The translations under genes were made by a program, and so were the position numbers. The notes below the pieces were generated by a model. It saw nothing but the letters and a program-made list of their open reading frames with translations, did no database searches and was not told where the DNA came from. DNA of 64,000 bases, taken from positions 317,887-381,886 of the IMG/VR virus record IMGVR_UViG_3300043399_000877. One strand, 5' to 3'. This document shows positions 4,688 to 47,166 of the stretch, one piece after another (positions within the stretch are counted from its first letter, which is position 1; each line of letters starts with the position of its first letter).

Positions 4688-5151
4688 TTTTTTCTTTTAG
4701 TCCATTTGGTAATTAGCCCAAAGTCTGTAGACTGAGTGCTTGACGGTTCAAATAATTCGGTTATTTTTTGTTTTGGTAAGAATGTATCGCATTCGTACAC
4801 ACCGCCCACGTTGTTTAACCATAATTCCCCTATCATGTCTAAACAACTTTCAATCAATCCGGCACCGCCTATAATAAAAATCGGCTGTTCAATTAGAGTA
4901 TACATCGACCTAAACTCGGGGAGAGTATAGCACTCTACTCCGGGAATTGGTCGATTTGTAATTACTATATTACGTCTCTTCGGCAAGGGTTTGGGCATAC
5001 CGCCGTCCCAAGTACCACGGCCCATAACCACTGCGGTTCCTAGAGTGGTCTTTTTAAACCACTCTAGATCTGCGGAATTTTTTGGCCAAGGAAGTTCACC
5101 GTTTTTTCCTATGCCCCAATATGCATCATGTGCGAGTATGGCTCTGATCAT
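4684..5151 (-). CDS. folA: Dihydrofolate reductase
   Basis: [30 protein letters not shown] and IIGG motifs. Confidence 0.95.
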
Positions 5152-35845: not shown

Positions 35846-36039
35846 CTCAGCATAAACAACGTGCGTTTGTGATCGTCAAATATTTTTATACCAGCACACT
35901 GGTAATCAATAAAAATCAGTTGGTAGTCGACATCTTTTTTGCCCATGTTTTGATCAATCCAAGACAGTAAGCCATGATAATAACCGGCCCGTCGCCGTTC
36001 AAACATTATAATGTCGTCTGTTATACTCTCAGATTTCAT
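35836..36039 (-). CDS. Small-family paralogue
   Basis: LSWIDQN...GIKIFDDHKRTLFMLRWG. Confidence 0.65.
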   Translation of the reverse strand: MKSESITDDIIMFERRRAGYYHGLLSWIDQNMGKKDVDYQLIFIDYQCAGIKIFDDHKRTLFMLRWG

Positions 36040-36445
36040 AATCCAAGTCGCCAGTGTCGCTCATGTTGTCACGACGGCCGCGCTGGCCGTCGTACTCTAG
36101 ATGGCGGATATAATTACGCAAATATCTTTCGATATTTTCACGGCCCACGGGATTCATGCTATGAACATAGAAATCAAAATCTGCAGGAATTTCGAGGTTC
36201 CCGTCCATATGCTGGTCCACAATCCACTGAGCAATATTGAAGCCAGTGGGCTCGTTGTTGCCGAGGTCGTGATCGAAAGAAATGAAGTTCGGAGCAATTA
36301 ATCCATGATTGATTATGGCTTGAATTGCTTGATCTCGATTGCGCACAACTGTCCACTGCTGCTCACGATAACGCTCTTGCATACGGCGAGGGGCCCAAGT
36401 AACGTCCTGCAAATTGCGCTCGTCATCAATAAAAAGATTCCACAT
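36029..36445 (-). CDS. Cyclic-phosphate-processing receiver-like domain protein
   Basis: LFIDDER, ISFDHDLG and VHSMNPVGRENI motifs. Confidence 0.8.
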   Translation of the reverse strand: MWNLFIDDERNLQDVTWAPRRMQERYREQQWTVVRNRDQAIQAIINHGLIAPNFISFDHDLGNNEPTGFNIAQWIVDQHMDGNLEIPADFDFYVHSMNPVGRENIERYLRNYIRHLEYDGQRGRRDNMSDTGDLDYEI

Positions 36446-36466
36446 GACTGTCTCCTAGTTTAGCTT

Positions 36467-36495
36467 AACCTAGCATGTCTAGCAACATATGTCAA
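36467..36495 (-). promoter_or_regulatory. Sigma70-type promoter driving the receiver gene and paralogue array
   Basis: TTGACA-N17-TAGGTT with TG extension. Confidence 0.65.
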
Positions 36496-36505
36496 TGCGG
36501 TTTTT

Positions 36506-36589
36506 TGGTGCCGCCGGGGAGACTCGAACTCCCACGACCGAAGTCACAAGCACCTCAAGCTTGCGTGGCTACCATTACACCACGGCGGC
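36506..36589 (-). tRNA. tRNA-Leu(GAG)
   Basis: Cloverleaf with long variable arm; loop TTGAGGT; encoded CCA. Confidence 0.9.
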
Positions 36590-36606
36590 AATTGTCCTTA
36601 ATATAA

Positions 36607-36774
36607 TCATTTAAGTTTTTGTATGGCATCTTCTATTTGTTTCAACGCAAAAGTAGTAAGGAGATACTCACTTCTTTTGTCACATTTGTCGCTTAAGAAA
36701 AGTTCTAAGTTACAAATAGCAGATTTAATATCACCCTCTATTGTACCTTTTGTGTTAATACAGAACAATCCCAT
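36607..36774 (-). CDS. Small hypothetical protein
   Basis: Start MGLFCI after SD GAGG; the longer ORF-track version overlaps a tRNA. Confidence 0.45.
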   Translation of the reverse strand: MGLFCINTKGTIEGDIKSAICNLELFLSDKCDKRSEYLLTTFALKQIEDAIQKLK

Positions 36775-36789
36775 GTAACTTCCTCTAAA

Positions 36790-36866
36790 TGGTACCCCCG
36801 GCAGGACTCTAACCCACAACCCTCGCGTTCGAAGCGCGATGCTCTATACAATTGAGCTACGGAGGC
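36790..36866 (-). tRNA. tRNA-Arg(TCG)
   Basis: Loop CTTCGAA; atypical T-loop TTAGAGT; CCA. Confidence 0.85.
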
Positions 36867-36871
36867 AAAAA

Positions 36872-37120
36872 TTATCTAAGTCGAGGATTCTGGACAAACC
36901 GTCCACCGGCACCGCGAACTTTAGGACGAACTATCTTGTTCGCCTTCATCTGAGTGGCTGCGATATCACATCCGTCATTGAAACTGGGACTGGAACTGTC
37001 ACATGGATCCAGTTTATTACGACTACGAGCGTAGCGATATCCAGCGGCATGACCACTGCAATCTTTGGTGCAGGGTCTGCCCTGGAAAGTTAGTTCGGTT
37101 ATGATATCACGTAACAACAT
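36872..37120 (-). CDS. Small late protein with a Cys motif
   Basis: CTKDCSGHAAGY...C..SFNDGC; TAAATActgtATG start. Confidence 0.6.
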   Translation of the reverse strand: MLLRDIITELTFQGRPCTKDCSGHAAGYRYARSRNKLDPCDSSSPSFNDGCDIAATQMKANKIVRPKVRGAGGRFVQNPRLR

Positions 37121-37135
37121 ACAGTATTTATGCCA

Positions 37136-37501
37136 TTACAGCAGTTTTAGATCCCCGGTTATGGGTTGCAGACGCTCGTGCGTGTCTGGGCCCACAGCAA
37201 TGCAGGTGTTGGTGGGCGTGCCGTTAAACACAGTCAAGCCTGCGTCCGTGACAAGCTCAGCGATGAGCCCTGCCGCACGGGCGCGATTGTATACGTCCAG
37301 CAACTCTTCCTCGCTGCTGACACCCACTGCAATCTTGGTAAACTTACCTTCTAGCCATTCTTTGACTCTCGGGTCAGCAAAGTTCACAAGAGTGGCTTTC
37401 ATGCTTGCATGTGCGCCCTGCGCGATCTCTTTACCACGCGGCATCTTGAGATCTTTTCTCATTACAATAATCTGTTTCATAGCAGTATCCTTAGTCGTCA
37501 A
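37136..37501 (-). CDS. Peptidyl-tRNA hydrolase, Pth2 type
   Basis: KQIIVMRKDL..GKEIAQGAHA, DAGLTVF and TCIAVGP motifs. Confidence 0.93.
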   Translation of the reverse strand: MTTKDTAMKQIIVMRKDLKMPRGKEIAQGAHASMKATLVNFADPRVKEWLEGKFTKIAVGVSSEEELLDVYNRARAAGLIAELVTDAGLTVFNGTPTNTCIAVGPDTHERLQPITGDLKLL

Positions 37502-38462
37502 CAGTTACTTCGGTCTTTGTCTTTTTGGTCTTGATCAGGGAGTAGATGACTCCGGCAGCCAAGATAGCAAAGGTTATAGCCAGTGATATCTCCGGTGGAA
37601 ATTTTGCCAAGCCAAGAAGATCGGCTATAAAGATTTTGCTTCCTATAAACACTAGAAGTATAGCCAGTGCTGTTTTTAGGTATTCAAATCTGTGCAGTAC
37701 CGCCGCAAGAGCAAAGTACAAGGCTCGCAATCCGAGTATTGCAAAAATATTGCTGGTATAGACAATGAACGGATCTGTTGTAATAGCAAAAACAGCAGGC
37801 ACACTATCGACTGCAAAAATCAAATCTGCAAGTTCAACAAGAACCAGTGCAAGGAACAGCGGAGTCACAAACCATTTGCCGGCATGTTTTACGAAGAAAC
37901 TGTTGCCGTGTAGTCGTTCGGTTACGTTGAATTTTGCCCTCATGAACTTTAGGGCAGGATTGTTTTCCAAGTCTGTTTCGGACTCTTTTACAAACAACAT
38001 CTTGACGCCGGTAAAGATCAAGAACGCAGCAAAAATGTAAAGTATCCAACCAAACTGGCTAACAAGCGTTGCACCCAGCCCAATCATAATACCACGAAGG
38101 ACGATAACGCCCAAAATACCCCAGAAAAGAACGCGGTGTTGATATTCTTTTGGAATAGAGAAGAAGCTGAAAATAAGAGCTATAACAAAGATGTTATCGA
38201 GCGCCAGTGTTTTCTCTACAACAAAAGCAGTTAGGTATTCAAATGACTGAACTGCACCGATCTGATACCAGACAAAACCGGAAAATGCCAGTCCTATTGC
38301 GATATAAACCGCTGAAAGTCTTAGACTTTCAGCAACACCGATTTCATGAGAATCTCGATGCAAAACACCTAGGTCAAAAACCAGCAGTGCAAGGACGATT
38401 GCCAAAAACAGCAACCACATCCACACCGGAGTGCCTAGAAAGAGAAGTGTTAAAAATTCCAA
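37491..38462 (-). CDS. TerC/Alx-family membrane protein
   Basis: EKTLALDNIFV, QHRVLFWGILG, DLIFAVDSVPA and TSNIFAILGLRALYF motifs. Confidence 0.95.
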   Translation of the reverse strand: MEFLTLLFLGTPVWMWLLFLAIVLALLVFDLGVLHRDSHEIGVAESLRLSAVYIAIGLAFSGFVWYQIGAVQSFEYLTAFVVEKTLALDNIFVIALIFSFFSIPKEYQHRVLFWGILGVIVLRGIMIGLGATLVSQFGWILYIFAAFLIFTGVKMLFVKESETDLENNPALKFMRAKFNVTERLHGNSFFVKHAGKWFVTPLFLALVLVELADLIFAVDSVPAVFAITTDPFIVYTSNIFAILGLRALYFALAAVLHRFEYLKTALAILLVFIGSKIFIADLLGLAKFPPEISLAITFAILAAGVIYSLIKTKKTKTEVTVDD

Positions 38463-38488
38463 TTATTTTCCCCTGTATGAGTCGTTAT

Positions 38489-38704
38489 TTACTGGTCAGT
38501 TCGCCATCTTTTGCGACAATCTGGACAGAAAAAATCTATCCAATAACTGTCAGCACTAGGGTCATAATTACCGGTGTTGCTGTCATATTTTTTAGTCACA
38601 CCGGGATGAGTGCATAATGCCTGCAACTTCGCAAGTTCATGGGCTAAACGTTCTTCTCTGCGATCGATACTAGCCCATTTACGCCTAACCTGCGCTGGCG
38701 TCAT
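38489..38704 (-). CDS. Small Zn-ribbon hypothetical protein
   Basis: CTH...NTGNYDPSADSYW..CPDC. Confidence 0.6.
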   Translation of the reverse strand: MTPAQVRRKWASIDRREERLAHELAKLQALCTHPGVTKKYDSNTGNYDPSADSYWIDFFCPDCRKRWRTDQ

Positions 38705-39129
38705 GATGCAGCCTCCTTTTCAATATATCGTGAACACTTTGCACGATCCGTCATGTTGCGTTCGGCTAGGTCTTCCCAAAATTTTTCATTTGGTTTTACC
38801 ACGCTGTACGCGAGTTGGCCCCCAAAATAGACCAAACACTCTCTGTTGTAGTTGCTGCTGAGAACCACAGTATATGCCGTGCTCACAGCAGCGCCTCCGA
38901 TGCCCCCGTGCCCGAGTGCTGTGCTGCCCCAGGTTTGTGGGAACATTCCGATTACGGAAAAATCACGAGTGGTGTGACGACGTGTTTTCTTAACGGTGGC
39001 GTTCTTATCACCACTTCGGCGGAATTCTTCCCAATCACGAGAGTCGTACTCAATCTCGGAAAATCCCGCGTACTCAGCATGTGCCAAAACTGCGGCAAGT
39101 TCTCCGATTGGATTATCAGTGTAGGTCAT
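38701..39129 (-). CDS. Conserved hypothetical phage protein
   Basis: FPQTWGSTALGHGGIGG motif. Confidence 0.65.
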   Translation of the reverse strand: MTYTDNPIGELAAVLAHAEYAGFSEIEYDSRDWEEFRRSGDKNATVKKTRRHTTRDFSVIGMFPQTWGSTALGHGGIGGAAVSTAYTVVLSSNYNRECLVYFGGQLAYSVVKPNEKFWEDLAERNMTDRAKCSRYIEKEAAS

Positions 39130-39478
39130 CGTAAGGTTCTCCTCGAGTGCGCAACACTCTCCATGTGTATTCTTTTTCTACTCGTTCTGCGTAACGTTTG
39201 CGCATCCCATCCGGATCAGTCATCCAGTATTTCATACCTTCCGGGTGTCCATAGCTGTGCGCTGGCGCATTGAAATTGAGCCAACGAACAATATCCGGAA
39301 GTCGCTGGATGTTAATATGATCAGCACTGGTGATTGCCCCGTAAAGGTTGTTGCACAACACATTTGTCAAAAAACCTCCGGGCGGTAATCCGTAAACCAG
39401 ATAGTTATCTAGAGATTTTCTAGTGTGTTCCGGAATTTCTCGTCCATAGCTGTCACTATCAAAATCAATCATGCACAT
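39116..39478 (-). CDS. Conserved hypothetical phage protein
   Basis: YLVYGLPPGGFLTNVLCNNL..A..AD motif. Confidence 0.6.
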   Translation of the reverse strand: MCMIDFDSDSYGREIPEHTRKSLDNYLVYGLPPGGFLTNVLCNNLYGAITSADHINIQRLPDIVRWLNFNAPAHSYGHPEGMKYWMTDPDGMRKRYAERVEKEYTWRVLRTRGEPYDDLH

Positions 39479-39878
39479 TTGTTGTCCCATTCGGAAAAAA
39501 TACCATGGTTGGCTTGCCGGTTTTCTTCGCATAGTCGTGCGTATACCAAGTGCCGCCGTTGTTCTGCCACGAATTTTGATATGGCACAACTAACAGCACA
39601 TCACACTCATTGACTATCTGTCTATTTCTTGCGAAATAACTGAGTGGTTCTCGAAAATCGTCTGATCGGTGGTGCGCCCTAAGTTCTGTTTTAATCGGTG
39701 GATGACAGACCACCTTAATACCCATTTCCGCAGCCAATATAGCAACCTGTTCATCTACTCCCACACAGTCTCCGTGATGCAATTCTGTGATGCCGTTTCG
39801 ACTGGTTAGATAGTTTCTAACCAGTCGAAACTGTTCATCATTCATTCCGGAACGGGTACCAGTTACGCCAACTTTCAT
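39465..39878 (-). CDS. SLOG/DprA-like nucleotide-binding protein
   Basis: VGVTGTR, LHHGDCVGVD, ARNRQIV and GGTWYT motifs. Confidence 0.7.
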   Translation of the reverse strand: MKVGVTGTRSGMNDEQFRLVRNYLTSRNGITELHHGDCVGVDEQVAILAAEMGIKVVCHPPIKTELRAHHRSDDFREPLSYFARNRQIVNECDVLLVVPYQNSWQNNGGTWYTHDYAKKTGKPTMVFFPNGTTNVHD

Positions 39879-40393
39879 TATCTCTCGTTCCATTGTCCAA
39901 CAATGCTCATAGCATGTTTCATATGCTTGTAAAGCAATCCGTTTTCTGGATCAGTTCGTACTAGGCGTTTTTTGCCCAGCACTTCGTCAAATCGATAAGC
40001 GTTGTCATCAAACAAGATGAAGTCACGCACGTCAGTTCCGTAGTTAGCAAGGTACTCTTGAACCTCGTGTGCGCGGTCATTAAGACCTGCACGTTGCCAG
40101 ATAACGTTATCCGGATCAGTTTTCCACGGGCTTGCAAGTTTTCCACGGAAGCCGCTGTTGCCGAAGGCAGCAGAGACCCAGTGCAGCACCATATTGTCAT
40201 CGTTACGGAGATAATTTTTCCAGGTTGACATAAGAACAAACTCAACCGGGTAACGGTCGTGAAGTTTGTTCATGAAATCAACAGCAACCGGGTCAAAGCG
40301 ATGCCACATTTCATAAGTGGCGTTATGTGCATAATGCACACGGCTGCTGGTAAAGACGCCGTCGATGTCTAAAAAAACTAGATATCTGCTCAT
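39878..40393 (-). CDS. HAD-family phosphatase (RNA-repair associated)
   Basis: FLDIDGV, STW and ILFDD motifs. Confidence 0.8.
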   Translation of the reverse strand: MSRYLVFLDIDGVFTSSRVHYAHNATYEMWHRFDPVAVDFMNKLHDRYPVEFVLMSTWKNYLRNDDNMVLHWVSAAFGNSGFRGKLASPWKTDPDNVIWQRAGLNDRAHEVQEYLANYGTDVRDFILFDDNAYRFDEVLGKKRLVRTDPENGLLYKHMKHAMSIVGQWNER

Positions 40394-40416
40394 AGCACCA
40401 CACCTTTCTTAGAGTT

Positions 40417-40445
40417 AATATAGTGTAGATATATCTGTGTGTCAA
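40417..40445 (-). promoter_or_regulatory. Sigma70-type promoter
   Basis: TTGACA-N17-TATATT. Confidence 0.7.
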
Positions 40446-40459
40446 GTAAGATTACGATC

Positions 40460-41014
40460 TTACCAGACACTCCAGATGTGTTTTTTACCGAGATAGGTGT
40501 CGGGATAGGGAAGATAATCCCAGTCTTGATCTTTGAGGACACGACGTTCAAGCTGACGAACAGCGTTGCGAACAGTCTCTTTGCTGAGAGTTTTGTAAGC
40601 AGTGTTGCAGCCAGTTTCGTTGCCGTATCCGTCTCGAGTACGTTTTGCAAATTCGCGACGAGCCCAGTCACGTTCTGCTTCCCAATCAATGTCACAAGGT
40701 TCGTAACGGAACTTGCTAACATAATAACGATAACGTTCGGGCAATGCACGAACATAGCAACTGTACATAATGCTTTCGGGATTGTTCCAACAAAACCAAT
40801 AGTTTTTGCGGACTACCCGGCAGTCAGCTTCGTAACGTGCTTCTGCTGCTGCAACTTCGTGTTGGTATTCTTCCTGAGTTTTCTTCACTTTTTTACGGTG
40901 ATACATGCCAGGATATCTGGCGGCGCGAAGCGCCAGATCTTTTATATGCTCATCCACGTATTGAGATTCCGATTTGGAATGATCAAACTTGGGTTTACGG
41001 TACGTTCTACTCAT
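40460..41014 (-). CDS. Basic hypothetical protein (MSRTYRK N-terminus)
   Basis: SD TAAGGAG; Arg/Lys/Tyr-rich. Confidence 0.65.
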   Translation of the reverse strand: MSRTYRKPKFDHSKSESQYVDEHIKDLALRAARYPGMYHRKKVKKTQEEYQHEVAAAEARYEADCRVVRKNYWFCWNNPESIMYSCYVRALPERYRYYVSKFRYEPCDIDWEAERDWARREFAKRTRDGYGNETGCNTAYKTLSKETVRNAVRQLERRVLKDQDWDYLPYPDTYLGKKHIWSVW

Positions 41015-41086
41015 TTTGACTCCTTATAAGCTATTAGCTCATAAGTCGTCGTAAAACTTTCTGTATCTCATTTCGTTTCCTTTATT

Positions 41087-41191
41087 TGGTGGAGAGGGAT
41101 GGAATCGAACCATCGACGCGGCAAGTTACCAGCCTGCCCGCTCTACCCAGACCAACTTCAAGATTGGTGATCTTGCTGAGCTACCGTCTCC
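41087..41191 (-). tRNA. Aberrant tRNA-Thr(GGT)-like gene with an expanded D-loop
   Basis: T-arm GATGG-TTCGATT-CCATC, loop CTGGTAA, CCA; ~34-nt D-loop; bulged C in the acceptor stem. Confidence 0.7.
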
Positions 41192-41198
41192 GTTATTT

Positions 41199-41274
41199 TG
41201 GCGCCCCCGGCAGGAGTCGAACCCACAACCTAGGGAGTAGAAATCCCTTGCTCTTCCAGTTGAGCTACGAAGGC
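41199..41274 (-). tRNA. tRNA-Arg(TCT)
   Basis: Loop TTTCTAC; canonical arms; CCA. Confidence 0.92.
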
Positions 41275-41507
41275 ATGTCATTTAGTAATTCATTTAGAAC
41301 TGCGTCAACCAGTTCTTCTACGAACTCATCTTCTTCACTTGCGAGTACAAAATCGTCTGCACTCATAGTACCAACCACCCATGCATCCCAGTGCCGTGTG
41401 CAAAACATTGCATCAGACAAAGATTCTCTAACGCGGTCTCGGAGTCGCCGTTTTAACGGCTCCGACACAGTTGCAATCAGGGCACGTCGGTCAAGTGCAG
41501 TGGTCAC
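41265..41507 (-). CDS. Hypothetical protein
   Basis: CTRHWDAWVVGTMSADDF motif. Confidence 0.6.
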   Translation of the reverse strand: MTTALDRRALIATVSEPLKRRLRDRVRESLSDAMFCTRHWDAWVVGTMSADDFVLASEEDEFVEELVDAVLNELLNDMPS

Positions 41508-41947
41508 AACACGTAAACCACTGGTTCAACGTCAGTCATTTCATCTTCGATGATCTGACTGATAATGTTCCAATTCCCGCCGCCGAGCCCAGCACCGATT
41601 TGCGGCATAGCAACCTGCGTTTCACCACTTTGACGAAGAACGCTGTTGATGGTGCGCATACAATCAGCCACTGCTTCGTAGTTCACAAAACGACTACCGT
41701 CTCGACCATACAAATGCTGAGTAATTGCGTTGATGATTACTTTGCCATTTGAAGGTACAAACTGTACATCACCCAGCTTGAGGCCATGCTCGTCGTACTG
41801 CTCAACATAAAACCGGTATGCGTCAAAGTGGTCGTCACGAACTATACGTGCAACACCTGAACCCATAACGCCCTGGGCATTGCAACCGTGTGCAATGTGC
41901 AGGATGTCGGTCTCGAAAAGATTGCCCTTGCGGTATTGGATTTTCAT
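41504..41947 (-). CDS. Macro domain protein (ADP-ribose processing)
   Basis: GNLF, IAHGCNAQGVMGSGVA and PQIGAGLGGGNW motifs. Confidence 0.92.
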   Translation of the reverse strand: MKIQYRKGNLFETDILHIAHGCNAQGVMGSGVARIVRDDHFDAYRFYVEQYDEHGLKLGDVQFVPSNGKVIINAITQHLYGRDGSRFVNYEAVADCMRTINSVLRQSGETQVAMPQIGAGLGGGNWNIISQIIEDEMTDVEPVVYVL

Positions 41948-41950
41948 CTT

Positions 41951-42064
41951 TTACTTCCGGAAAAGATTGGTAACTTTTGCTTGCAGGTCTTTTGCCCATT
42001 GCGGCTGAGGAAGGTTCCAACCAATACCCAGTCCGATAGCGATTCCAACTGCTAGTGTAAACAT
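41951..42064 (-). CDS. Small membrane peptide (37 aa)
   Basis: Manual translation MFTLAVGIAIGLGIGWNLPQPQWAKDLQAKVTNLFRK; SD AGGAG and promoter upstream. Confidence 0.65.
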   Translation of the reverse strand: MFTLAVGIAIGLGIGWNLPQPQWAKDLQAKVTNLFRK

Positions 42065-42086
42065 CTGTGTCTCCTTTGTTAACTGT

Positions 42087-42115
42087 AATATAGTGCCGGG
42101 TGTTGCTGTTGTCAA
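42087..42115 (-). promoter_or_regulatory. Sigma70-type promoter
   Basis: TTGACA-N17-TATATT. Confidence 0.7.
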
Positions 42116-42127
42116 GCAACAATACGA

Positions 42128-42700
42128 TTAATCGTCTATTGCCAATGGATCTGTGATAACTGGAACCGATCCACGAAACATAAGATTTGATATTCCGAAA
42201 TCTAAATCATATTGCCCGTGTTGTTTTAATTTTTCCAATACTGCCATGATTTCTGGATAAGACCTTGATATATCAGCAACTACTCGTTGATACTGGTCAC
42301 GATCTCTTCCATCATTTGAGAGTATGTAATCGATCATATTGAACACATTACGATTATCTGTGCTGCGCGGATCAAAACTATCAAGCCGTTCCATTCTCAC
42401 TACGCGAAAGTTGTTGGGAAGTTTTATAATATTTCCACGAAGTTTTGGAACATGAGGGTTCCCGCGTAGCTGCATAATGTACTGTAAATACTGATCATAA
42501 CCGGCGTCGTTTTTATAAATTTTAACAACGTAATCGGCGCCCGGTTTAGCCAACACATGGGCATATAATCCGCTCCCCAAAGATTCAAACTCAAATCCAC
42601 GCTGCTGTAGTTGTTTGACGTAATCTTCTACGCCCAAGACCTCTTGGGCAGAAGCATACGCTGGGTTTTTTCTGTATCCGGTTAATTCACGTAATCGCAT
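42128..42700 (-). CDS. Protein-kinase-like fold protein
   Basis: LGSGLYAHV...VVKI, MERL and DLDFGISNLM...ITDP; start MRLREL after TATAAATA. Confidence 0.65.
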   Translation of the reverse strand: MRLRELTGYRKNPAYASAQEVLGVEDYVKQLQQRGFEFESLGSGLYAHVLAKPGADYVVKIYKNDAGYDQYLQYIMQLRGNPHVPKLRGNIIKLPNNFRVVRMERLDSFDPRSTDNRNVFNMIDYILSNDGRDRDQYQRVVADISRSYPEIMAVLEKLKQHGQYDLDFGISNLMFRGSVPVITDPLAIDD

Positions 42701-42714
42701 ACAGTATTTATATT

Positions 42715-42792
42715 TGGTACTCCCGAGAGGATTCGAACCCCTGACCTTCGCGTTCGTAGCGCGACGCTCTAATTCCACTGAGCTACGGGAGT
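42715..42792 (-). tRNA. tRNA-Arg(ACG)
   Basis: Loop CTACGAA; CCA. Confidence 0.93.
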
Positions 42793-42793
42793 A

Positions 42794-43276
42794 TTAATTT
42801 ATCGATCGATTATCGGCAAATTGAATAGTTTTTCCAACATAGTTGGCTTCGGCACCGGTCATCATAGCGCGACCGGAGGATTCCAGATCCCAAACAAAAT
42901 CTGCCATAAATTCTTGAATGTCTCCGGTCACCTTTTTTAGTTTGTTGACCACCGCTGCGTTTATTGGTCTTACAGCTTCCAATTCTTGCTGGACTTCTGG
43001 TGGCAGGTTTCCCGTCACCGGTACCCATTGTGGTGGATTGGCGTTTCCGAGTTCTGAATGTATTTTGCCCATAACACCGGTTTGGGGGTCATACTCGGTA
43101 CCCTTGGTTGACTCATCTTCAACAGCATTTGCAAGCATCATGAATGTTCTTGCAACGTCCGGTGCAGCTTTAATCAACCAAACATCACCGTCTGCAAATT
43201 CATCTATATAACCTATGAGAACAGTATTTGCACTTTCATTAATACTGTCTAATTTATTCAGTAATGATCTAAACAC
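42794..43276 (-). CDS. Hypothetical late protein
   Basis: GTG start after SD AGGAG and a TAAATA box; N-terminus FRSLLNKLDSINES. Confidence 0.6.
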   Translation of the reverse strand: MFRSLLNKLDSINESANTVLIGYIDEFADGDVWLIKAAPDVARTFMMLANAVEDESTKGTEYDPQTGVMGKIHSELGNANPPQWVPVTGNLPPEVQQELEAVRPINAAVVNKLKKVTGDIQEFMADFVWDLESSGRAMMTGAEANYVGKTIQFADNRSIN

Positions 43277-43311
43277 AGCGACTCCTTTTTTATTATTTAT
43301 GTGAAAGTCTC

Positions 43312-43386
43312 TGGTGCAGCCTGGAGGATTTGAACCTCCGACATCTGTCGAGTCAGGACAGCGCTCTACCACTGAGCTAAGGCTGC
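43312..43386 (-). tRNA. tRNA-Val(GAC)
   Basis: Loop CTGACTC (pyrimidine at 37); CCA. Confidence 0.9.
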
Positions 43387-43387
43387 A

Positions 43388-43465
43388 TGGAACTGGCTGG
43401 GGGATTTGAACCCGCCGCTACAAGATCCACAATCTTGTGTGCTAAACCGCTAACACTAAACCAGC
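43388..43465 (-). tRNA. tRNA-His(GTG)
   Basis: Loop TTGTGGA; no G at -1; G1-U72; CCA. Confidence 0.85.
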
Positions 43466-43469
43466 ATTA

Positions 43470-43661
43470 TTAGATTACAATGAACTTGTGATCAGTCAAT
43501 TCTTCTCTAAGAACAAAGTCCTCGTCGAGTTTTACAACTTGCCCTTCTAAAACTCGTTCAATAAGTTTCTTGCTCTCTGCAAGGCTCATTCCAGTGTGCT
43601 GTCTCACAGACAGTATAGCACTATATGAATTTGCGCCTTTTTTAAAACCTATGATTTGCAT
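43470..43661 (-). CDS. Ribosomal protein bL12 C-terminal-like small protein
   Basis: AILSVRQHTGMSLAESKKLIE resembles the L7/L12 CTD (IK.VR..TGLGLKEAK.LVE). Confidence 0.6.
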   Translation of the reverse strand: MQIIGFKKGANSYSAILSVRQHTGMSLAESKKLIERVLEGQVVKLDEDFVLREELTDHKFIVI

Positions 43662-43677
43662 ACCGATACTCCTCTAT

Positions 43678-43748
43678 TGGTGCCCCCTGTAGGAATCGAA
43701 CCTACCGATCCGGGCTTAGGACGCCTGAGCCGGCCCAGCGGAGAGGGC
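43678..43748 (-). tRNA. tRNA-Arg(CCT) with a minimal D-arm
   Basis: 71 nt; D-arm GCTG-GGC-CGGC; loop GTCCTAA; canonical T-arm; CCA. Confidence 0.7.
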
Positions 43749-43754
43749 TAAATT

Positions 43755-43832
43755 TGGCGGATAAGGTTGGACTCGAACCAACAACGCAAGGCCTCAACCT
43801 GGCACCCGCTCTACCTCTTGAGCTACCGATCC
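43755..43832 (-). tRNA. Aberrant tRNA-Asn(GTT)-like gene
   Basis: Canonical D- and T-arms and GCCA end; irregular anticodon arm with loop AGGTTGA. Confidence 0.6.
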
Positions 43833-43843
43833 GCATAATATTT

Positions 43844-43993
43844 TGTCAGCGAACTACAAGCTGGTGGACTCGAACGCACCATCGCCGGCTGTACGCCGGT
43901 GTCCTATCCTTTAGACGAAACTTCAATCTTATCAGCACTTTTCCGCACCCCGGCGTGGGTTGGGAAGTTACTGGCAACAAAGGTTCGCTGACA
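43844..43993 (-). ncRNA. Unknown ~150-nt structured RNA with an internal tRNA-like domain
   Basis: 11-bp terminal inverted repeat TGTCAGCGAAC/GTTCGCTGACA enclosing a hairpin domain, a D-arm, CCGGC-GTACA-GCCGG and a TTCGAGT T-loop. Confidence 0.6.
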
Positions 43994-44016
43994 TGGACGA
44001 TCGCCGCGCCCTAACT

Positions 44017-44093
44017 TGGTTGTCCCTCTCGGAGTCGAACCGAGGACCCCAGTCTTATCAGGACTGTGCTCTAACCACCTGAGCTAAGGGACA
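44017..44093 (-). tRNA. tRNA-Ile(GAT)
   Basis: Loop CTGATAA; CCA. Confidence 0.93.
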
Positions 44094-44101
44094 GAAATTT
44101 T

Positions 44102-44178
44102 TGGTGTGCCGGGTGAGATTTGAACCCACGACCTTGGAGTTAAGAGCTCCCTGCTCTAGACCACTGAGCTACCGGCGC
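44102..44178 (-). tRNA. tRNA-Lys(CTT)
   Basis: Loop CTCTTAA; CCA. Confidence 0.92.
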
Positions 44179-44484
44179 ATTATTTGGAAGATACGCTCGC
44201 TCTCCCAGCCAGGGCACTTTCGCTCCCCAACAAAAGCACAAGCGTATCATCGAAATAATGGTGAACCGGGTAGGATTTGAACCTACGTTGGCATTGCTGC
44301 TACAGATTAAAAGTCTGTCCCCATCGGCCTCTCGGGCACCGGTCCTAATGAATTCTGTGAAGTTTTGCTTTTCACGTTTGCGTTTCGATTTATATGGTTT
44401 ATCGTGTGCGCCCGCAACTCGAAACCGTGCTGCGGCCACAAACGGATTCCTCTGTTTAGGAATCTTCTGACGTTTTCGTTTCAT
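44140..44484 (-). CDS. Basic peptide ORF that runs without a stop codon into tRNA-Lys(TTT)
   Basis: MKRKRQKIPKQRNPFVAAARFRVAGAHDK...; SD AAGGA; only the first ~46 codons lie outside tRNA genes. Confidence 0.55.
   Translation of the reverse strand: MKRKRQKIPKQRNPFVAAARFRVAGAHDKPYKSKRKREKQNFTEFIRTGAREADGDRLLICSSNANVGSNPTRFTIISMIRLCFCWGAKVPWLGERAYLPNNAPVAQWSRAGSS
44259..44345 (-). tRNA. tRNA-Lys(TTT) with a class II (long variable arm) body
   Basis: ACAGA-CTTTTAA-TCTGT arm; variable region AGCAGCAATGCCAAC; CCA. Confidence 0.8.
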
Positions 44485-44570
44485 CTAAAAATCTTTCCTT
44501 GTATTTGCGTATAGCTGCTATCAGTGCCGCTGTGGGCGCGGGTGGTCGGTTACACGCTTCTACGATACGG

Positions 44571-44759
44571 TCATACTCTTCCTGAGTCAACAGTATCGTC
44601 TCGGTCTCCTGATCGGTCGTCTTCATTTTTTCTACTTCCTGCTCGGTTCATTACTATAAGATATTCTGGATCAGTAACTCCAAAATCTCCGGGATTCTGT
44701 ATAATCTGCTCCATCTGCTGTTCTGACAGCAATGAAAAAAAACTGTTTGATCCAGTCAT
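44571..44759 (-). CDS. Small hypothetical protein
   Basis: 62 aa; SD AGGAG. Confidence 0.45.
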   Translation of the reverse strand: MTGSNSFFSLLSEQQMEQIIQNPGDFGVTDPEYLIVMNRAGSRKNEDDRSGDRDDTVDSGRV

Positions 44760-44775
44760 TTTTTACTCCTGTTAA

Positions 44776-44851
44776 TGGTCCCCAGGGACGGGATCGAACC
44801 GCCGACACCATGCTCTTCAGGCACGTGCTCTACCAACTGAGCTACCTGGGG
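44776..44851 (-). tRNA. tRNA-Phe(GAA)
   Basis: Loop CTGAAGA; CCA. Confidence 0.93.
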
Positions 44852-44857
44852 ATTATT

Positions 44858-44943
44858 TGGTGGGTCGTCTAGGAATCGAACCTAGCATGGGAGTTAACCC
44901 GGCGGATTTACAATCCGCTGCCACACCTTGTAGCATACGACCC
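44858..44943 (-). tRNA. tRNA-Tyr(GTA)
   Basis: Loop TTGTAAA; long variable arm; atypical D-arm; CCA. Confidence 0.85.
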
Positions 44944-45255
44944 TTAAATTATGTTATTTTGTCTATCAAATTCTTCTTCGTCGAACTCGTCTAGTGTACA
45001 AGTGGGATTCCAAATGTACACGTCTGTTCGTTTAGCGCCTTTGCCAATAGTAAACTCGGCCCAACCAGTGGGAATTGGTCGATCCCATCCGTTGCGCTTT
45101 GCATCCTTGACTGAACTGAATTTACCAATTCTAGCCAGCAAGTGTGCCATATTTGTCTCTGTTTCCAGAATCGGCAACAGGACATTTGTGTCTGCAAACA
45201 GCATTGTCTTGTCTGATTCTTCGCATTTTTTACCGATAAAACAAAACTCAGCCAT
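44944..45255 (-). CDS. Stand-alone S4-like RNA-binding domain protein (TyrRS C-terminal-like)
   Basis: LLARIGKFSSVKDAKRNG...IGKG. Confidence 0.55.
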   Translation of the reverse strand: MAEFCFIGKKCEESDKTMLFADTNVLLPILETETNMAHLLARIGKFSSVKDAKRNGWDRPIPTGWAEFTIGKGAKRTDVYIWNPTCTLDEFDEEEFDRQNNII

Positions 45256-45274
45256 TTTCAGTTCCTCTTGTGTT

Positions 45275-45352
45275 TGGTAGCCCCAACGGGGATCGAACCC
45301 GTTTCTCCAGATTGAAAGTCTAGTATCCTAACCTGCCGTAGACGATGGGGCC
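45275..45352 (-). tRNA. tRNA-Glu(TTC)
   Basis: Loop CTTTCAA; CCA. Confidence 0.92.
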
Positions 45353-45357
45353 ATGTT

Positions 45358-45433
45358 TGGTGGTGCTGGTAGGGATCGAACCTACGACACGTGGAATATG
45401 AGTCCACTGCTCTACCCGCTGAGCTACAGCACC
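45358..45433 (-). tRNA. tRNA-Met(CAT), elongator (Ile2 not excluded)
   Basis: Loop CTCATAT; paired 1-72; CCA. Confidence 0.88.
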
Positions 45434-45439
45434 GTTATA

Positions 45440-45514
45440 TGGAGGTCAATAGTGGAATCGAACCACTCTAAGCGGATTTGCAATCCGCGGCATAAGCCAC
45501 TCTGCCAATTGACC
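45440..45514 (-). tRNA. tRNA-Cys(GCA)
   Basis: Loop TTGCAAA; U73; CCA. Confidence 0.92.
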
Positions 45515-45522
45515 ATGTATTT

Positions 45523-45599
45523 GCATTTATGAAACACACTCTACGCTATGCGCCCGCTTCGGCTTCGAAGGCCGCCGGACGAGTGTGTTTGATAAATGC
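45523..45599 (-). repeat. Long inverted repeat (19-bp stem, one mismatch) before the first tRNA
   Basis: GCATTTAT(C)AAACACACTC...GAGTGTGTTT(C)ATAAATGC. Confidence 0.8.
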
Positions 45600-45709
45600 C
45601 TGTTAGTATTTTACTCCGGTGTTATCGCCACACGTTTCATCCACTAACCCGCCCGTTCCCCGTTTTTTAAAGTGCTTGGGTTGGACCTCGTTTCCAATCT
45701 GCACTGAAT

Positions 45710-45743
45710 AAAAAAACCCTCCGAGTATTGCTACCGGAGGGTT
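45710..45743 (-). terminator. Intrinsic terminator (attenuator) in the tRNA-cluster leader
   Basis: AACCCTCCG-GTA-GCAA-TAC-T-CGGAGGGTT ending in a run of seven T. Confidence 0.9.
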
Positions 45744-45769
45744 CCTAAACCTATTGATGTTACGTTAAG

Positions 45770-45868
45770 TTAACATCCGGTTCCACCTCCAGAGCGATTG
45801 CCAAAGCAATACTCACGACGCATTCTAATGCGCTCAATTTTATTGACATGTTTAAACATGGTGGTCAT
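45770..45868 (-). CDS. Leader peptide (32 aa) of the tRNA cluster
   Basis: MTTMFKHVNKIERIRMRREYCFGNRSGGGTGC between promoter and terminator; purine-rich upstream region; its 3' half is complementary to the terminator. Confidence 0.75.
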   Translation of the reverse strand: MTTMFKHVNKIERIRMRREYCFGNRSGGGTGC

Positions 45869-45908
45869 TGCGTTGTCTTTCTTTCTGTTTGTTTTAACTT
45901 ACTCTGTT

Positions 45909-45937
45909 AACATACTACAAGTTTATTTAGCTGTCAA
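45909..45937 (-). promoter_or_regulatory. Sigma70-type promoter of the leader/tRNA cluster
   Basis: TTGACA-N17-TATGTT. Confidence 0.8.
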
Positions 45938-45947
45938 CACATTTTAT

Positions 45948-46268
45948 TTATCTTTTTTGATTATCTTTTTTCCATTTACGGATGTAGTCAATTTTCTGTT
46001 CTGTAGTCCACTGACTAAGATAATCGTTGTCACGGTCAAAAAGTTCGATGAGTCGGTCCTGGTCTACTACTTCGTAATCGACAATTTGCTCACCCAACCA
46101 TTTTTGGCTGAATTCTTCAACTTCTTCACAAGTCACACTATCCAATGCCCATTCGGGTTGAACTGTTTTTTCAACGTTTAGTGCTTGTAGGTCGTCCATA
46201 GGTACCACATAGCGCATACGGTGTGTGCTTGTGGTAGTAACGACAACATACTTGTTATACAACGTCAT
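45948..46268 (-). CDS. Conserved hypothetical phage protein
   Basis: HRMRYVV...WALDSVT..EFSQKWLGEQI motif. Confidence 0.65.
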   Translation of the reverse strand: MTLYNKYVVVTTTSTHRMRYVVPMDDLQALNVEKTVQPEWALDSVTCEEVEEFSQKWLGEQIVDYEVVDQDRLIELFDRDNDYLSQWTTEQKIDYIRKWKKDNQKR

Positions 46269-46269
46269 G

Positions 46270-47166
46270 TCAATCCCTCGTTAGGTCATCAGCCAAGTTT
46301 ATTATTTTATCCAGCGCATACAATTGATCCCGCCAACCGGATCGTATCCCGCTGAGTCCATAGTATGCACCGGCAATCTGCCCGGTTACTGCTGCAACAG
46401 TGTCGGTATCATCTCCGAGGTTTGTGGCTAGCAACACGGCTTCATCAAAACTATCGGTATTATAAAAACACCAAATAGCTGCTTCCAACGTATCAATTAC
46501 ATATCCGCTGCTGCGAATATCGTTGCGCTTTCTTGACCACAGGTCCCGGTTGGTCATTTGCTTGACCTCGTCAGCCCAGTGTTCTGCGGGCTTGACAGCT
46601 AGTGCCGCCTCCTTGCTAGTAGCGTGTAGGGCGCGATGCAAGATGCTTGCTAGAAGCTCGCAGCTATGCACGGCAAGGCTGTATGCATGGGTTGTTTTGC
46701 TCTGCGCCGCCGCAATGCTCACAGCCAAATCTGGATCCTCGTGGTAATACAAAACCACCGGCGCCAGTCGCATTATACTGCCGTTTCCGCTGTAATTTCT
46801 ACTTGCATTGTTTTCAACAGCACCACGTTCTATAAAGTTTTCCAGAGCGTTAACAGTGGTCATCCCGATATCAAAACATACACCGGTACTGCTGTTGTGT
46901 CCACGAAGATACCAGTTTGTAAAACGATTTAATAGATCAACCGGTTGTAGACCGTCGCAGTCTCTCAAACTTTCGGCAAGGCAAAGAGCCATGCTGGTAT
47001 CATCGGTCCAGTATCCCACTGGCAAGTTGAACGGTCCGCCGCCCAGCATATCTGTAACCGGAGGATAACTGTCTCTCTTTTTAAATTCAACTGCGGCGCC
47101 CACAGCATCACCTACTGCAAGTCCCACAAGCATTCCACGAAGTCGATCTTTTAATTTTTCGTCCAT
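46270..47166 (-). CDS. ADP-ribosylglycohydrolase (DraG/ARH family)
   Basis: GLAVGDAVG, WTDDTSM, GNGSIMR and GDDTDTVAAVTG motifs. Confidence 0.95.
   Translation of the reverse strand: MDEKLKDRLRGMLVGLAVGDAVGAAVEFKKRDSYPPVTDMLGGGPFNLPVGYWTDDTSMALCLAESLRDCDGLQPVDLLNRFTNWYLRGHNSSTGVCFDIGMTTVNALENFIERGAVENNASRNYSGNGSIMRLAPVVLYYHEDPDLAVSIAAAQSKTTHAYSLAVHSCELLASILHRALHATSKEAALAVKPAEHWADEVKQMTNRDLWSRKRNDIRSSGYVIDTLEAAIWCFYNTDSFDEAVLLATNLGDDTDTVAAVTGQIAGAYYGLSGIRSGWRDQLYALDKIINLADDLTRD

Follow-up and report, generated by a model that had tools for sequence, protein, structure and literature searches.

A conserved leader ORF spelled largely in codons read by the downstream tRNA genes suggests an attenuator of a giant phage tRNA cluster

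Upstream of the tRNA genes of a giant phage lies a conserved 32-codon ORF, spelled almost entirely in codons that those tRNAs read and followed by an intrinsic terminator, an arrangement that looks like a switch producing phage tRNAs when those codons are decoded slowly. We examined a 64,000-nt stretch (hereafter, the window) of the IMG/VR record IMGVR_UViG_3300043399_000877, and all elements described below lie on its minus strand. The initial annotation had reported a promoter, a 32-codon ORF, a terminator and a tRNA cluster, and each is where it was placed, so the observation itself is confirmed. Its interpretation, a leader peptide whose codons index the phage's own tRNAs and which acts as an OR-gate counter-defence switch, is only partly supported: comparative data strongly support the idea that leader codons index the downstream tRNA genes and are coupled to a terminator/antiterminator choice, whereas other parts do not hold or remain speculative.

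The module begins with a sigma-70-type promoter, TTGACA-N17-TATGTT (45937-45909), with a GATAAATAAA motif just upstream (45952-45943). It continues with the leader ORF of 32 codons plus TAA (45868-45770) and a terminator (45746-45710; -21.9 kcal/mol, z = -6) consisting of a long GC-rich stem with one bulge, a GCAA (GNRA) tetraloop at 45731-45728, and a U7 tract. The tRNA cluster (45514-36506) is interspersed with small ORFs and encodes, in order, Cys, Met, Glu, Tyr, Phe, Lys-UUU, Lys-CUU, Ile, Asn, Arg-CCU, His, Val, Arg-ACG, Arg-UCU, Thr-GGU-like, Arg-UCG and Leu-GAG tRNAs. ARAGORN identifies 15 of these; the count of 17 anticodons requires His-GTG (43465-43391), found by Rfam only at 45 bits, and a Thr-GGT-like gene (41190-41091) that carries a ~27-nt insert in the D-loop and scores below the Rfam threshold (24.7 bits). 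No sigma-70-like promoter was found on this strand between the leader and 44590.

With standard wobble, the 17 anticodons read 29 codons. Codons 1–22 of the leader (45868-45803), which we term the sensor segment, are all among these and sample 13 of the 17 anticodons, and 26 of the 32 codons are readable overall; without the weak Thr-like gene the run would be codons 4–22. Because 51.6% of codons in the window's long genes are cluster-readable, a run of 22 has a probability of 4.7e-7 (p^22), and composition-preserving shuffles of the ORF reach it in 5e-6 of mononucleotide shuffles and in 0 of 50,000 dinucleotide shuffles. The run is the longest in all six frames of the window (the next are 19 and 18), and among 522 ATG ORFs the next-best run from the start codon is 12.

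To ask whether the arrangement is conserved, we collected homologues without applying any tRNA criterion. Syntenic homologues (L033/L034 and L039, where L numbers designate the retrieved loci and contigs) were reached through the neighboring 103-aa ORF, 43 metagenome loci through a terminator pattern, and further class-2 loci (see below) from IMG/VR. The result is a widespread family in uncultured aquatic phages, in which two classes of leader are revealed. The 27 distinct class-1 leaders share a conserved KH…EY…G core, and each precedes a Cys/Met/Glu/Tyr/Phe/Lys/Ile/His/Arg tRNA sub-cluster. The 11 distinct class-2 leaders are rich in L, S, T, V, W, G, N, P, A, D and Q, and each precedes an Asn/Ser/Val/Trp/Asp/Gly/Thr/Leu/Gln/Pro/Ala sub-cluster. 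A TTGACA/TATAAT-like promoter and the GATAAATAAA motif recur at the same place in nearly all class-1 homologues. The ORF is open in the same frame in all 27 class-1 leaders, at 29–32 codons apart from L070 (23 codons), with indels in multiples of three and no conservation of alternative frames; class-2 leaders have 27–30 codons.

The correspondence between leader codons and downstream tRNAs is replicated across this family, although the homologues are phylogenetically related, so per-locus p-values are not independent, and some tRNA sets are truncated by contig ends or depend on relaxed ARAGORN calls. The latter were used because an Rfam search of 15 loci gave no anticodons. On contig L071 the two leaders lie in series: codons of leader 1 are read by set 1 versus set 2 in 13 versus 6 cases, and those of leader 2 in 2 versus 17 (Fisher p = 6e-4). 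Codons preceding the conserved GGAGG box (see below) are typically covered by the leader's own tRNA set in 16–20 of 23 cases against 8–10 expected; for L092 coverage is 20/23 against 10.2, and only 1/23 by the class-1 core set. Leaders sample nearly all downstream anticodons (L039, L068, L088 and L091, 11/11 each; L092, 14/14), where the null expectation is about half. Non-core tRNAs match leader codons in 12 of 19 cases against 6.9 expected (p = 0.0018), and rare codons track rare tRNAs: L088 alone has TGG with Trp-CCA, CAA CAA with Gln-UUG, and ATA with Ile-UAU. Variant codons in the core columns stay within the 21-codon core set in 38 of 54 cases against about 40% expected. Not every codon conforms, however, as GCA at position 4 and AGC at position 12 of class 1 are conserved but have no tRNA in the adjacent sub-cluster. 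Across the family, sensor residues are 72% C/M/E/Y/F/K/I/H/R against 36% in the tails, and codon-position entropy is nearly flat (0.64/0.70/0.76), so the selected feature is unlikely to be an ordinary folded protein.

The enrichment stops where a stalled ribosome would begin to cover a GGAGG box (CUGGAGG, 45792-45786), which is complementary to the 5′ arm of the terminator and would be the 5′ strand of an antiterminator. In the window the box starts 18 nt before the stop codon, and in most members 15–18 nt before it (12 nt in L049, 9 nt in L070), within the stretch masked for a ribosome at the stop codon, which is classic attenuator geometry. A G-run box is conserved in all 28 aligned sequences, and it pairs with CCUCC in the predicted nascent-transcript minimum free energy fold of 27/27 class-1 leaders, either with no ribosome or with a ribosome at codon 10, but cannot form this helix with a ribosome at the stop codon. 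The nascent-transcript minimum free energy fold of the window's own leader likewise contains the GGAGG:CCUCC helix. In three of four class-2 leaders the box is sequestered unless a ribosome is stalled upstream. This putative antiterminator is only 5–7 bp long, both of its strands are invariant and so give no covariation support, and the full-length transcript favors the terminator by about 10 kcal/mol; equilibrium folding cannot decide the switch, because the terminator state is always the more stable one. The stop codon (45772-45770) lies in the 5′ strand of a hairpin (hairpin B, 45783-45747) nested inside the antiterminator, and a hairpin with the stop codon at or in its 5′ side is present in every class-1 and class-2 member folded, with many different stem sequences. 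In the terminator, the stem pair next to CCUCC/GGAGG covaries (CG 15, GC 12, AU 1). A further local hairpin (hairpin A, 45814-45792; GAGUAUUGC / GCAAUCGCUC), which may be a pause or anti-antiterminator element, is not kept in this form in L033; relatives have a smaller hairpin around the conserved CGCGAGUAUCGC, with only weak covariation.

The leader of the window is preceded by an A-rich, unstructured 5′ UTR with no good Shine-Dalgarno sequence (pairing to the anti-SD of -0.9 kcal/mol against a gene median of -5.6), whereas relatives have a conserved AAGGA tract about 12–16 nt upstream of the ATG, which is unusually far.

All four leader–terminator and local pairings listed in the initial annotation exist, but several details required correction. 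The 10-bp outer antiterminator helix is particular to a few members. An apparent compensatory change between the leader and the terminator 'loop' (U-A in the window, C-G in L039) looked strong at first, but alignment of 28 sequences shows that this central pair is a C.A mismatch in 19, that covariation does not exceed shuffles, and that the position is the R of a GNRA tetraloop. The 'loop' is in fact a stem extension (AGUA/UACU) capped by that tetraloop (GCAA or GCGA), which explains its conservation. GAACC/GGUUU and GAUGUU/AACAUC simply form a local hairpin present in both conformations, and the conserved candidate antiterminator is only the short GGAGG:CCUCC helix. Each sensor codon occurs only 1–3 times, unlike the runs in the his, phe and leu leaders, so sensitivity to a single tRNA is uncertain and an analogue integrator of decoding speed is at least as likely as a strict OR gate. 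Class-2 terminators are followed by sigma-70-like promoters, so there the attenuators can only modulate read-through. A counter-defence purpose is speculation, and negative feedback on tRNA supply fits the data equally well.

Taken together, we consider it likely that this is a ribosome-mediated transcription attenuator controlling a phage tRNA operon. In this model, an early sigma-70-type promoter starts a transcript whose first feature is a short ORF, the first ~20–22 codons of which are a 'pangram' of the codons read by the tRNA genes downstream. As RNA polymerase moves on, the GGAGG box would pair with the CCUCC arm of the terminator, stabilized by the nested hairpin B. A ribosome that reads the sensor codons quickly would reach the stop codon, cover the box and open hairpin B, so that the terminator folds and the tRNA genes are not transcribed. 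If decoding of any or many sensor codons is slow, because the host pool is poor for those codons or because the tRNAs are uncharged, depleted or cleaved, the ribosome would lag upstream, the antiterminator would persist, and polymerase would read into the spacer RNA and the tRNA genes. Accumulating phage tRNAs would then speed up leader translation and close the loop, giving negative feedback. Sequence analysis establishes the parts and their conservation, the match of leader codons to downstream tRNAs in two independent classes, the co-variation of rare codons with rare tRNAs, and the geometry of box, stop codon and terminator; translation of the ORF, the polarity of the switch (that stalling gives read-through), the response of read-through to charged tRNA supply, and the physiological signal are inferred.

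Other explanations appear unlikely. The same parts could operate with the opposite polarity, efficient leader translation promoting read-through, for example by coupling the ribosome to polymerase or blocking Rho, so that plentiful cognate tRNA raises tRNA-gene transcription as positive feedback or a licensing check. The codon–tRNA correspondence does not by itself give the sign of the response, and the full-length fold favors the terminator regardless. However, the stop codon lies about 25–35 nt upstream of the terminator's 5′ arm, so a terminating ribosome cannot reach the terminator but does cover the box that competes with it, and sensor-codon enrichment ends where a stalled ribosome would begin to mask that box. 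It is about equally unlikely that the ORF encodes a functional micro-protein, or that the promoter-to-terminator transcript is a small RNA, with its position and codon content incidental or reflecting only shared expression timing. The peptide core is conserved, many positions are conserved at the nucleotide level, including third positions, and the terminator is strong enough to release a transcript of about 190 nt. Against this, two unrelated peptide classes each consist of the amino acids served by their own downstream sub-cluster, rare residues co-vary with rare tRNAs, codon-position entropy is almost flat, and no Pfam family matches (hmmscan at E <= 10 gave none for the window peptide, and a typical relative gave only a sub-threshold zinc-finger hit).

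Antitermination by a protein or RNA factor, of the lambda N/nut, Q or HK022 put type, would make the small ORF irrelevant; a strong early promoter followed at once by structured RNA and a terminator, and then by a conserved structured spacer, is compatible with it. We consider this slightly less likely still, given the conserved frame, ORF length and stop-codon position, the codon content that tracks the tRNA genes, and the absence of a matching Rfam family. Although our statistic was chosen after seeing the sequence and the cluster reads about half of all codons used, the length of the run and the shuffles speak against chance, which is effectively refuted by the comparative data, the pattern being replicated in a second leader class and in dozens of homologues.

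The closest parallels are the enterobacterial leader-peptide attenuators (trp, his, leu, pheA, and the multivalent thr and ilvGMEDA leaders), which likewise have a promoter-proximal short ORF with regulatory codons, an intrinsic terminator with a competing antiterminator helix, and a stop codon placed so that a terminating ribosome blocks the antiterminator. The thr leader (Thr and Ile) and the ilvGMEDA leader (Leu, Val, Ile) already sense more than one amino acid. Here, the regulated genes would be tRNA genes rather than biosynthetic enzymes, the leader samples 9–15 different anticodons one to three times each instead of carrying runs of one to three codon types, two leader classes split the amino acids between two sub-clusters, the candidate antiterminator is only 5–7 bp, the element is phage-borne, and there is no sequence homology to known leaders. 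The E. coli pheST attenuator also places a gene of the translation apparatus under control of ribosome stalling on a leader, but it senses one amino acid and controls a synthetase, whereas here many codons would be sensed and the products are the tRNAs themselves. T-box riboswitches report on tRNA status and decide between terminator and antiterminator upstream of translation-related genes, but a T-box binds one specific uncharged tRNA directly and needs no translation; here a conserved ORF is present, and in a search of 36000-46300 at E <= 1 no Rfam family other than tRNA, T-box included, matches the leader or spacer. In drug-sensing leader peptides (ermC, cat, mef/msr) a ribosome stalled on a short leader also remodels downstream RNA, but the stall is caused by an antibiotic together with the nascent peptide, whereas here codon identity appears to be the signal. 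Phage tRNA clusters (T4, T5, mycobacteriophages) have been proposed to compensate for codon-usage mismatch or to replace host tRNAs cut by anticodon nucleases; here too there is a large phage-encoded tRNA set, which sits among ADP-ribosyl-hydrolase, Macro, RNA-ligase and PTH2-type genes, but full-text literature searches found no report of codon-sensing control of such clusters, and we know of none.

How phages control their tRNA genes is essentially unknown, and whether phage tRNAs serve codon supply or counter-defence is actively debated. A leader that polls the codons served by the downstream tRNAs would be the first case of tRNA genes governed by translational attenuation, and would extend attenuation from one to three amino acids to a dozen decoding species. 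It would turn the purpose of phage tRNAs into the directly testable question of which tRNA shortages open the switch, and would offer synthetic biology a compact natural sensor of tRNA availability. The family is widespread in aquatic phage metagenomes, so the finding is not a curiosity of one genome. A more far-reaching possibility, which we raise only tentatively, is that the two leader classes together form a damage-and-demand sensor for almost the whole decoding capacity of the cell. When host tRNAs are cleaved by anticodon nucleases, depleted by host shut-off, or simply mismatched to phage codon usage, ribosomes would slow on the matching leader and the phage would switch on exactly the corresponding sub-cluster of replacement tRNAs, an inducible counter-defence and codon-supply homeostat working by a mechanism not described for any tRNA gene.

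The module was not found among cultured phages: DNA searches of the cultured-phage collection with the leader region, in near and distant modes, and with a typical relative returned nothing, and a 7-kb query matched only tRNAs and the ADP-ribosylglycohydrolase gene. Eneladusvirus genomes reached through that gene have dispersed tRNAs and no such module, and more distant ADP-ribosylglycohydrolase loci (L027, L028) run straight into tRNA-Gln with no leader. Homologues of the upstream 106-aa ORF in IMG/VR (50–57% identical) are not next to tRNAs. Exact-pattern scans of IMG/VR with the window's terminator, and with leader plus loop, returned only the source contig, and a pattern search of the retrieved loci for further CCUCC...GGAGG-U terminators found only the class-2 leader of L059/L071.

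Two other promoter-like sites were examined. That at 46273-46245 overlaps the start codon of the 106-aa ORF and is probably a chance match, and that at 42115-42087, noted in the initial annotation as an internal promoter, drives a small membrane-protein ORF, not a leader. Between the terminator and the first tRNA lies a structured spacer RNA (45709-45515) that has no Rfam match but is conserved across the family; its first hairpin has an invariant AACGAG loop and four pairs with compensatory changes.

On the minus strand, a promoter scan places a TTGACA-N17-TATGTT promoter at 45937-45909, followed by an ATG ORF of 32 codons at 45868-45770 and by a GC-rich hairpin with a U7 tract at 45746-45710 (-21.9 kcal/mol, z = -6 against shuffles). 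A 195-nt spacer (45709-45515) separates this predicted terminator from the tRNA genes, which run from 45514 down to 36506. ARAGORN identifies 15 tRNAs. Rfam adds tRNA-His(GTG) at 43465-43391 with 45 bits, a gene that ARAGORN misses even at relaxed thresholds; conversely, the 71-nt tRNA-Arg(CCT) called by ARAGORN at 43678-43748, with its anticodon at position 29, does not reach the Rfam threshold. A Thr(GGT)-like gene at 41190-41091 carries an insertion of ~27 nt in the D-loop, is not called by ARAGORN, and scores 24.7 bits, below the threshold of Rfam; it may be a pseudogene, an intron-bearing gene, or a processed precursor, and the three ACC codons of the leader depend on it. With these two additions, the 17 anticodons and 29 readable codons listed in the initial annotation are correct, and codons 1-22 of the ORF are all readable. 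The observation on which that annotation rests is confirmed. The gene called tRNA-Lys(UUU) at 44259-44345, with 87-nt homologs in the related loci L033, L034, L039, and others, has a class II body with a long variable arm and a Leu/Ser/Tyr-type D arm, although its discriminator is A73 and its anticodon loop is Lys-like (CU-UUU-AA). No ordinary class I tRNA-Lys(UUU) is seen in the window, and this gene could encode a nuclease-resistant or decoy Lys tRNA, or a tRNA charged with another amino acid. The window belongs to IMGVR_UViG_3300043399_000877, a 381,886-bp phage contig. It also encodes a protein with a T4 gp9/10-like baseplate domain and a ClpB-like ATPase, and searches found no close relative among cultured phages.

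The run of readable codons exceeds what is expected by chance. In the long genes of the window, 51.6% of codons are readable by the cluster, so that a pre-specified run of 22 has p = 4.7e-7; shuffling the ORF's own letters gives 5e-6 for mononucleotide shuffles and 0 in 50,000 dinucleotide shuffles. Without any prior on position, the run is the longest in all six frames of the 64 kb (the next are 19 and 18) and begins exactly at an ATG, whereas among 522 ATG ORFs the next-best run from the start codon is 12. No real gene exceeds 64% coverage, while the leader has 81% overall, made up of 100% over codons 1-22 and 40% over the last ten.

To find relatives, we used the 103-aa ORF inside the cluster, which has 47 homologs whose contigs yielded syntenic loci. 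Loci L033/L034 carry the ADP-ribosylglycohydrolase gene, three small ORFs, a promoter, a 32-codon leader, a terminator, a spacer, and then tRNA Cys/Met/Glu and onward; loci L039/L040 carry a 30-codon leader in the same arrangement. A pattern taken only from the terminator, scanned over the metagenome collection, returned 43 loci from lakes, saline lakes, and oceans, and a pattern from a second leader type, scanned over IMG/VR, gave further loci. tRNA content played no part in any of these searches.

Two leader classes are revealed, each of which matches its own tRNA sub-cluster. Class 1 comprises 27 distinct ORFs, including that of the window, of 29-32 codons (one, in locus L070, has 23), with a conserved core of the type K-H-M-F-I-K-S-I-R-E-C-R-E-Y-R-F-G. 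Wherever enough downstream sequence exists, these leaders are followed, 190-500 nt past the terminator (about 840 nt in locus L085), by a sub-cluster with a conserved core of Cys-GCA, Met-CAT, Glu-TTC, Tyr-GTA, Phe-GAA, Lys-TTT/CTT, Ile-GAT, His-GTG, and Arg-ACG/TCT/TCG, exactly the residues of the peptide core apart from one Ser. Class 2 comprises 11 distinct ORFs rich in L, S, T, V, W, G, N, P, A, D, and Q around a W-T-x-G-x-x-N-P motif, which precede Asn, Trp, Ser (two isoacceptors), Ala, Val, Asp, Gly (two isoacceptors), Thr, Leu, Gln, and Pro genes. On contig L071 both modules lie in series: leader 1 codons are read by set 1 versus set 2 in 13 versus 6 cases, and leader 2 codons in 2 versus 17 cases (Fisher p = 6e-4). 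The IMG/VR contigs L106 and L108 show the same arrangement.

For class-1 loci with at least 3 kb of downstream sequence, 16-20 of the 23 codons before a conserved GGAGG box are typically read by the locus's own tRNAs, compared with 8-10 for random windows of real genes. For the class-2 locus L092, from a 330-kb relative of the window phage, the figure is 20/23 against 10.2, and only 1/23 would be read by the class-1 core set. Conversely, the leaders sample nearly every downstream anticodon: 11/11 in L039, L068, L088, and L091, 9/9 in L084, 14/14 in L092, 12/13 for leader 2 of L071, and 13/17 in the window. The null means are about half, and empirical p-values run from about 0.07 for the weakest class-1 locus to below 5e-5 for L091. 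Because the homologs are related, these p-values are not independent; the independent units are the two classes and the co-variation events described next. The enrichment is confined to the part upstream of the GGAGG box, where 72% of class-1 residues belong to the nine-residue set (C/M/E/Y/F/K/I/H/R), compared with 36% in the tails, roughly the background.

Variable leader codons also track variable tRNAs. The leader of L088 alone has TGG, two CAA codons, and ATA, and its sub-cluster alone has Trp-CCA (the first gene), Gln-TTG, and Ile-TAT. The leader of L039 has two CAA codons and CTC, and its cluster has Gln-TTG and Leu-GAG. The leaders of the window and of L033/L034 have GTC, AAT/AAC, and ACC/ACT; their clusters have Val-GAC and Asn-GTT, and the window also has the Thr-GGT-like gene. 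Overall, 12 of 19 non-core tRNAs have a matching codon in their own leader, against 6.9 expected when tRNA sets are permuted among loci (p = 0.0018, not corrected for phylogeny). In the core columns, variant codons remain within the 21-codon core set in 38 of 54 cases, against about 40% expected from single-base neighbors. The choice among isoacceptor codons leans in the same direction, with 48 of 58 against 35 expected in class 1, although these are homologous, non-independent codons, and 16 of 24 against 11 expected in class 2 (p = 0.03).

We considered whether the element is a translated ORF or simply an RNA. The frame is open in all members, indels are multiples of three, and start and stop keep their places relative to the RNA structures. 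Other frames are not conserved: a 29-codon ORF at 45760-45849 (minus strand) overlaps the leader in another frame and would encode a hydrophobic peptide, but 9 of 27 relatives have no alternative-frame ORF of 15 codons or more, and the start positions differ. Codon-position entropy is nearly flat (0.64/0.70/0.76), and between the window and L033 there are 11 non-synonymous and 3 synonymous differences, with 18 codons identical. This does not look like a protein under ordinary purifying selection, and fits selection on codon class plus RNA structure. Initiation is the weak point, since the leader of the window has no Shine-Dalgarno sequence and relatives have an AAGGA tract rather far upstream of the ATG. 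Upstream of the -35 element in nearly all class-1 loci (45943-45952, minus strand, in the window), and directly upstream of class-2 leaders, lies a GATAAATAAA motif containing ATAAATA, which resembles T4-type late promoters and precedes or overlaps the sigma-70-type promoter. Some class-2 leaders (L049, L059/L071, L075, L078) have only this motif and no -35/-10 pair, so the leaders may also be transcribed late.

The terminator stem is supported by one clearly covarying pair (CG 15, GC 12, AU 1). What the initial annotation took for the terminator loop is a stem extension, AGUA/UACU, capped by a GNRA tetraloop (GCAA or GCGA). The 10/10 helix that it proposed between GAGUAUUGCU and this region is real in the window, but in the family its central pair is a C.A mismatch in 19 of 28 sequences, and its covariation does not exceed shuffles. 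Three features are conserved: a G-run box (GGAGG, or GAGGGG in some members) near the 3′ end of the ORF, identical in sequence to the 3′ arm of the terminator and complementary to its CCUCC arm; a hairpin, B, between the box and the terminator, with many different stem sequences and the stop codon at or in its 5′ side; and a fixed spacing, with the box starting 15-18 nt before the stop codon in most members. In nascent transcripts that end before the 3′ arm of the terminator, the MFE structure pairs CCUCC with the box in 27/27 class-1 leaders, both with no ribosome and with a ribosome at codon 10, whereas a ribosome at the stop codon covers the box. Three of four class-2 leaders are predicted to form this antiterminator only with the upstream stall, like the 1:2 pairing of trp. 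The ribosome footprint usually extends about 12-13 nt beyond the first base of the A-site codon; from this we infer that a stall leaves the window's box, at 45790, free only up to about codon 22, where the run of cluster-readable codons ends. The full-length transcript favors the terminator by about 10 kcal/mol, and the choice would therefore be kinetic, as in classical attenuators.

The spacer itself (45515-45709 in the window, and at the same position in L033, L039, and L047-L088) contains a conserved structured RNA of about 100-200 nt between the attenuator and tRNA-Cys. Its first hairpin has an invariant AACGAG loop and four pairs with compensatory changes; a second hairpin and a long variable helix follow, and some variable helices contain T-arm-like pieces. 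It has no match in Rfam.

We propose that the module is a ribosome-mediated attenuator in which the time the ribosome needs to cross the sensor codons sets the outcome. In this view, fast decoding would take the ribosome to the stop codon, mask the box, and allow the terminator to form, so that the tRNAs stay off; slow decoding of any or many sensor codons would leave the box free, the antiterminator would hold, and polymerase would read into the spacer RNA and the tRNA genes. Because the products are the tRNAs that read the sensor codons, the loop would be a negative feedback on decoding capacity. Each codon occurs only 1-3 times, so we regard an analog integrator as at least as likely as a strict OR gate, and the natural trigger may be codon-usage mismatch, host shut-off, or anticodon-nuclease defense, which sequence alone does not distinguish. 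The arrangement of the module, its conservation, and the correspondence between leader codons and downstream tRNAs come directly from the sequence comparisons, whereas the translation of the ORF, the response of transcription to decoding, its polarity, and its purpose are inferred. The interpretation in the initial annotation is partly supported: its core idea is strongly supported by independent comparative evidence, the antiterminator as drawn there is partly wrong, and the counter-defense purpose remains a hypothesis. We hold with high confidence that leader codon content is functionally tied to the downstream tRNA genes, and with somewhat less, though still good, confidence that attenuation operates with the polarity given here.

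In the window, no sigma-70-like promoter follows the terminator before 44590, and the first five tRNAs therefore appear to depend on read-through. An internal promoter at 42115-42087 is followed by a good Shine-Dalgarno sequence and a 35-codon ORF (41959-42064, minus strand) for a small hydrophobic, probably membrane, peptide just upstream of the Macro-domain gene, and is not a leader-terminator module. Class-2 terminators, by contrast, are usually followed by TTGACA-type promoters, so that there the attenuator can only gate transcription arriving from upstream. In L059/L071 (oriented 8820-9200), L075, L078, L081, L091, L094, L103, and L110, one or two such promoters and a further structured stretch of about 300 nt lie between the class-2 terminator and the first tRNA (Asn).

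The proposed logic is that of the trp, his, leu, thr, ilv, and pheA leaders and of pheST, and the thr and ilvGMEDA leaders sense two or three amino acids. Full-text literature searches found neither attenuation applied to tRNA genes nor a leader that enumerates a dozen decoding species, and these are the respects in which the module, as inferred from sequence alone, would extend a mechanism already described. Rfam has no matching family, Pfam has none for the peptide, and the element is not a T-box.

The tRNA clusters are surrounded by genes that undo ADP-ribosylation or repair tRNA. The window has an ADP-ribosylglycohydrolase and a Macro-domain protein (46270-47166 and 41504-41947, minus strand), and relatives (L033, L035-L037, L041) have SIR2, RNA ligase, a PNK-like HAD/AAA_33 protein, a PTH2-type peptidyl-tRNA hydrolase, and a KTI12-like ATPase, which suggests a translation-protection island. 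Related large-phage tRNA clusters (L025 at 4825-4899, L027 at 2341-2412, L028 at 136-206 and 2547-2618, and the class-2 locus L094) carry tRNAs with CUA or UCA anticodons, which ARAGORN calls Pyl or SeC; these are possible amber or opal suppressors, hinting at stop-codon recoding in some of these phages.
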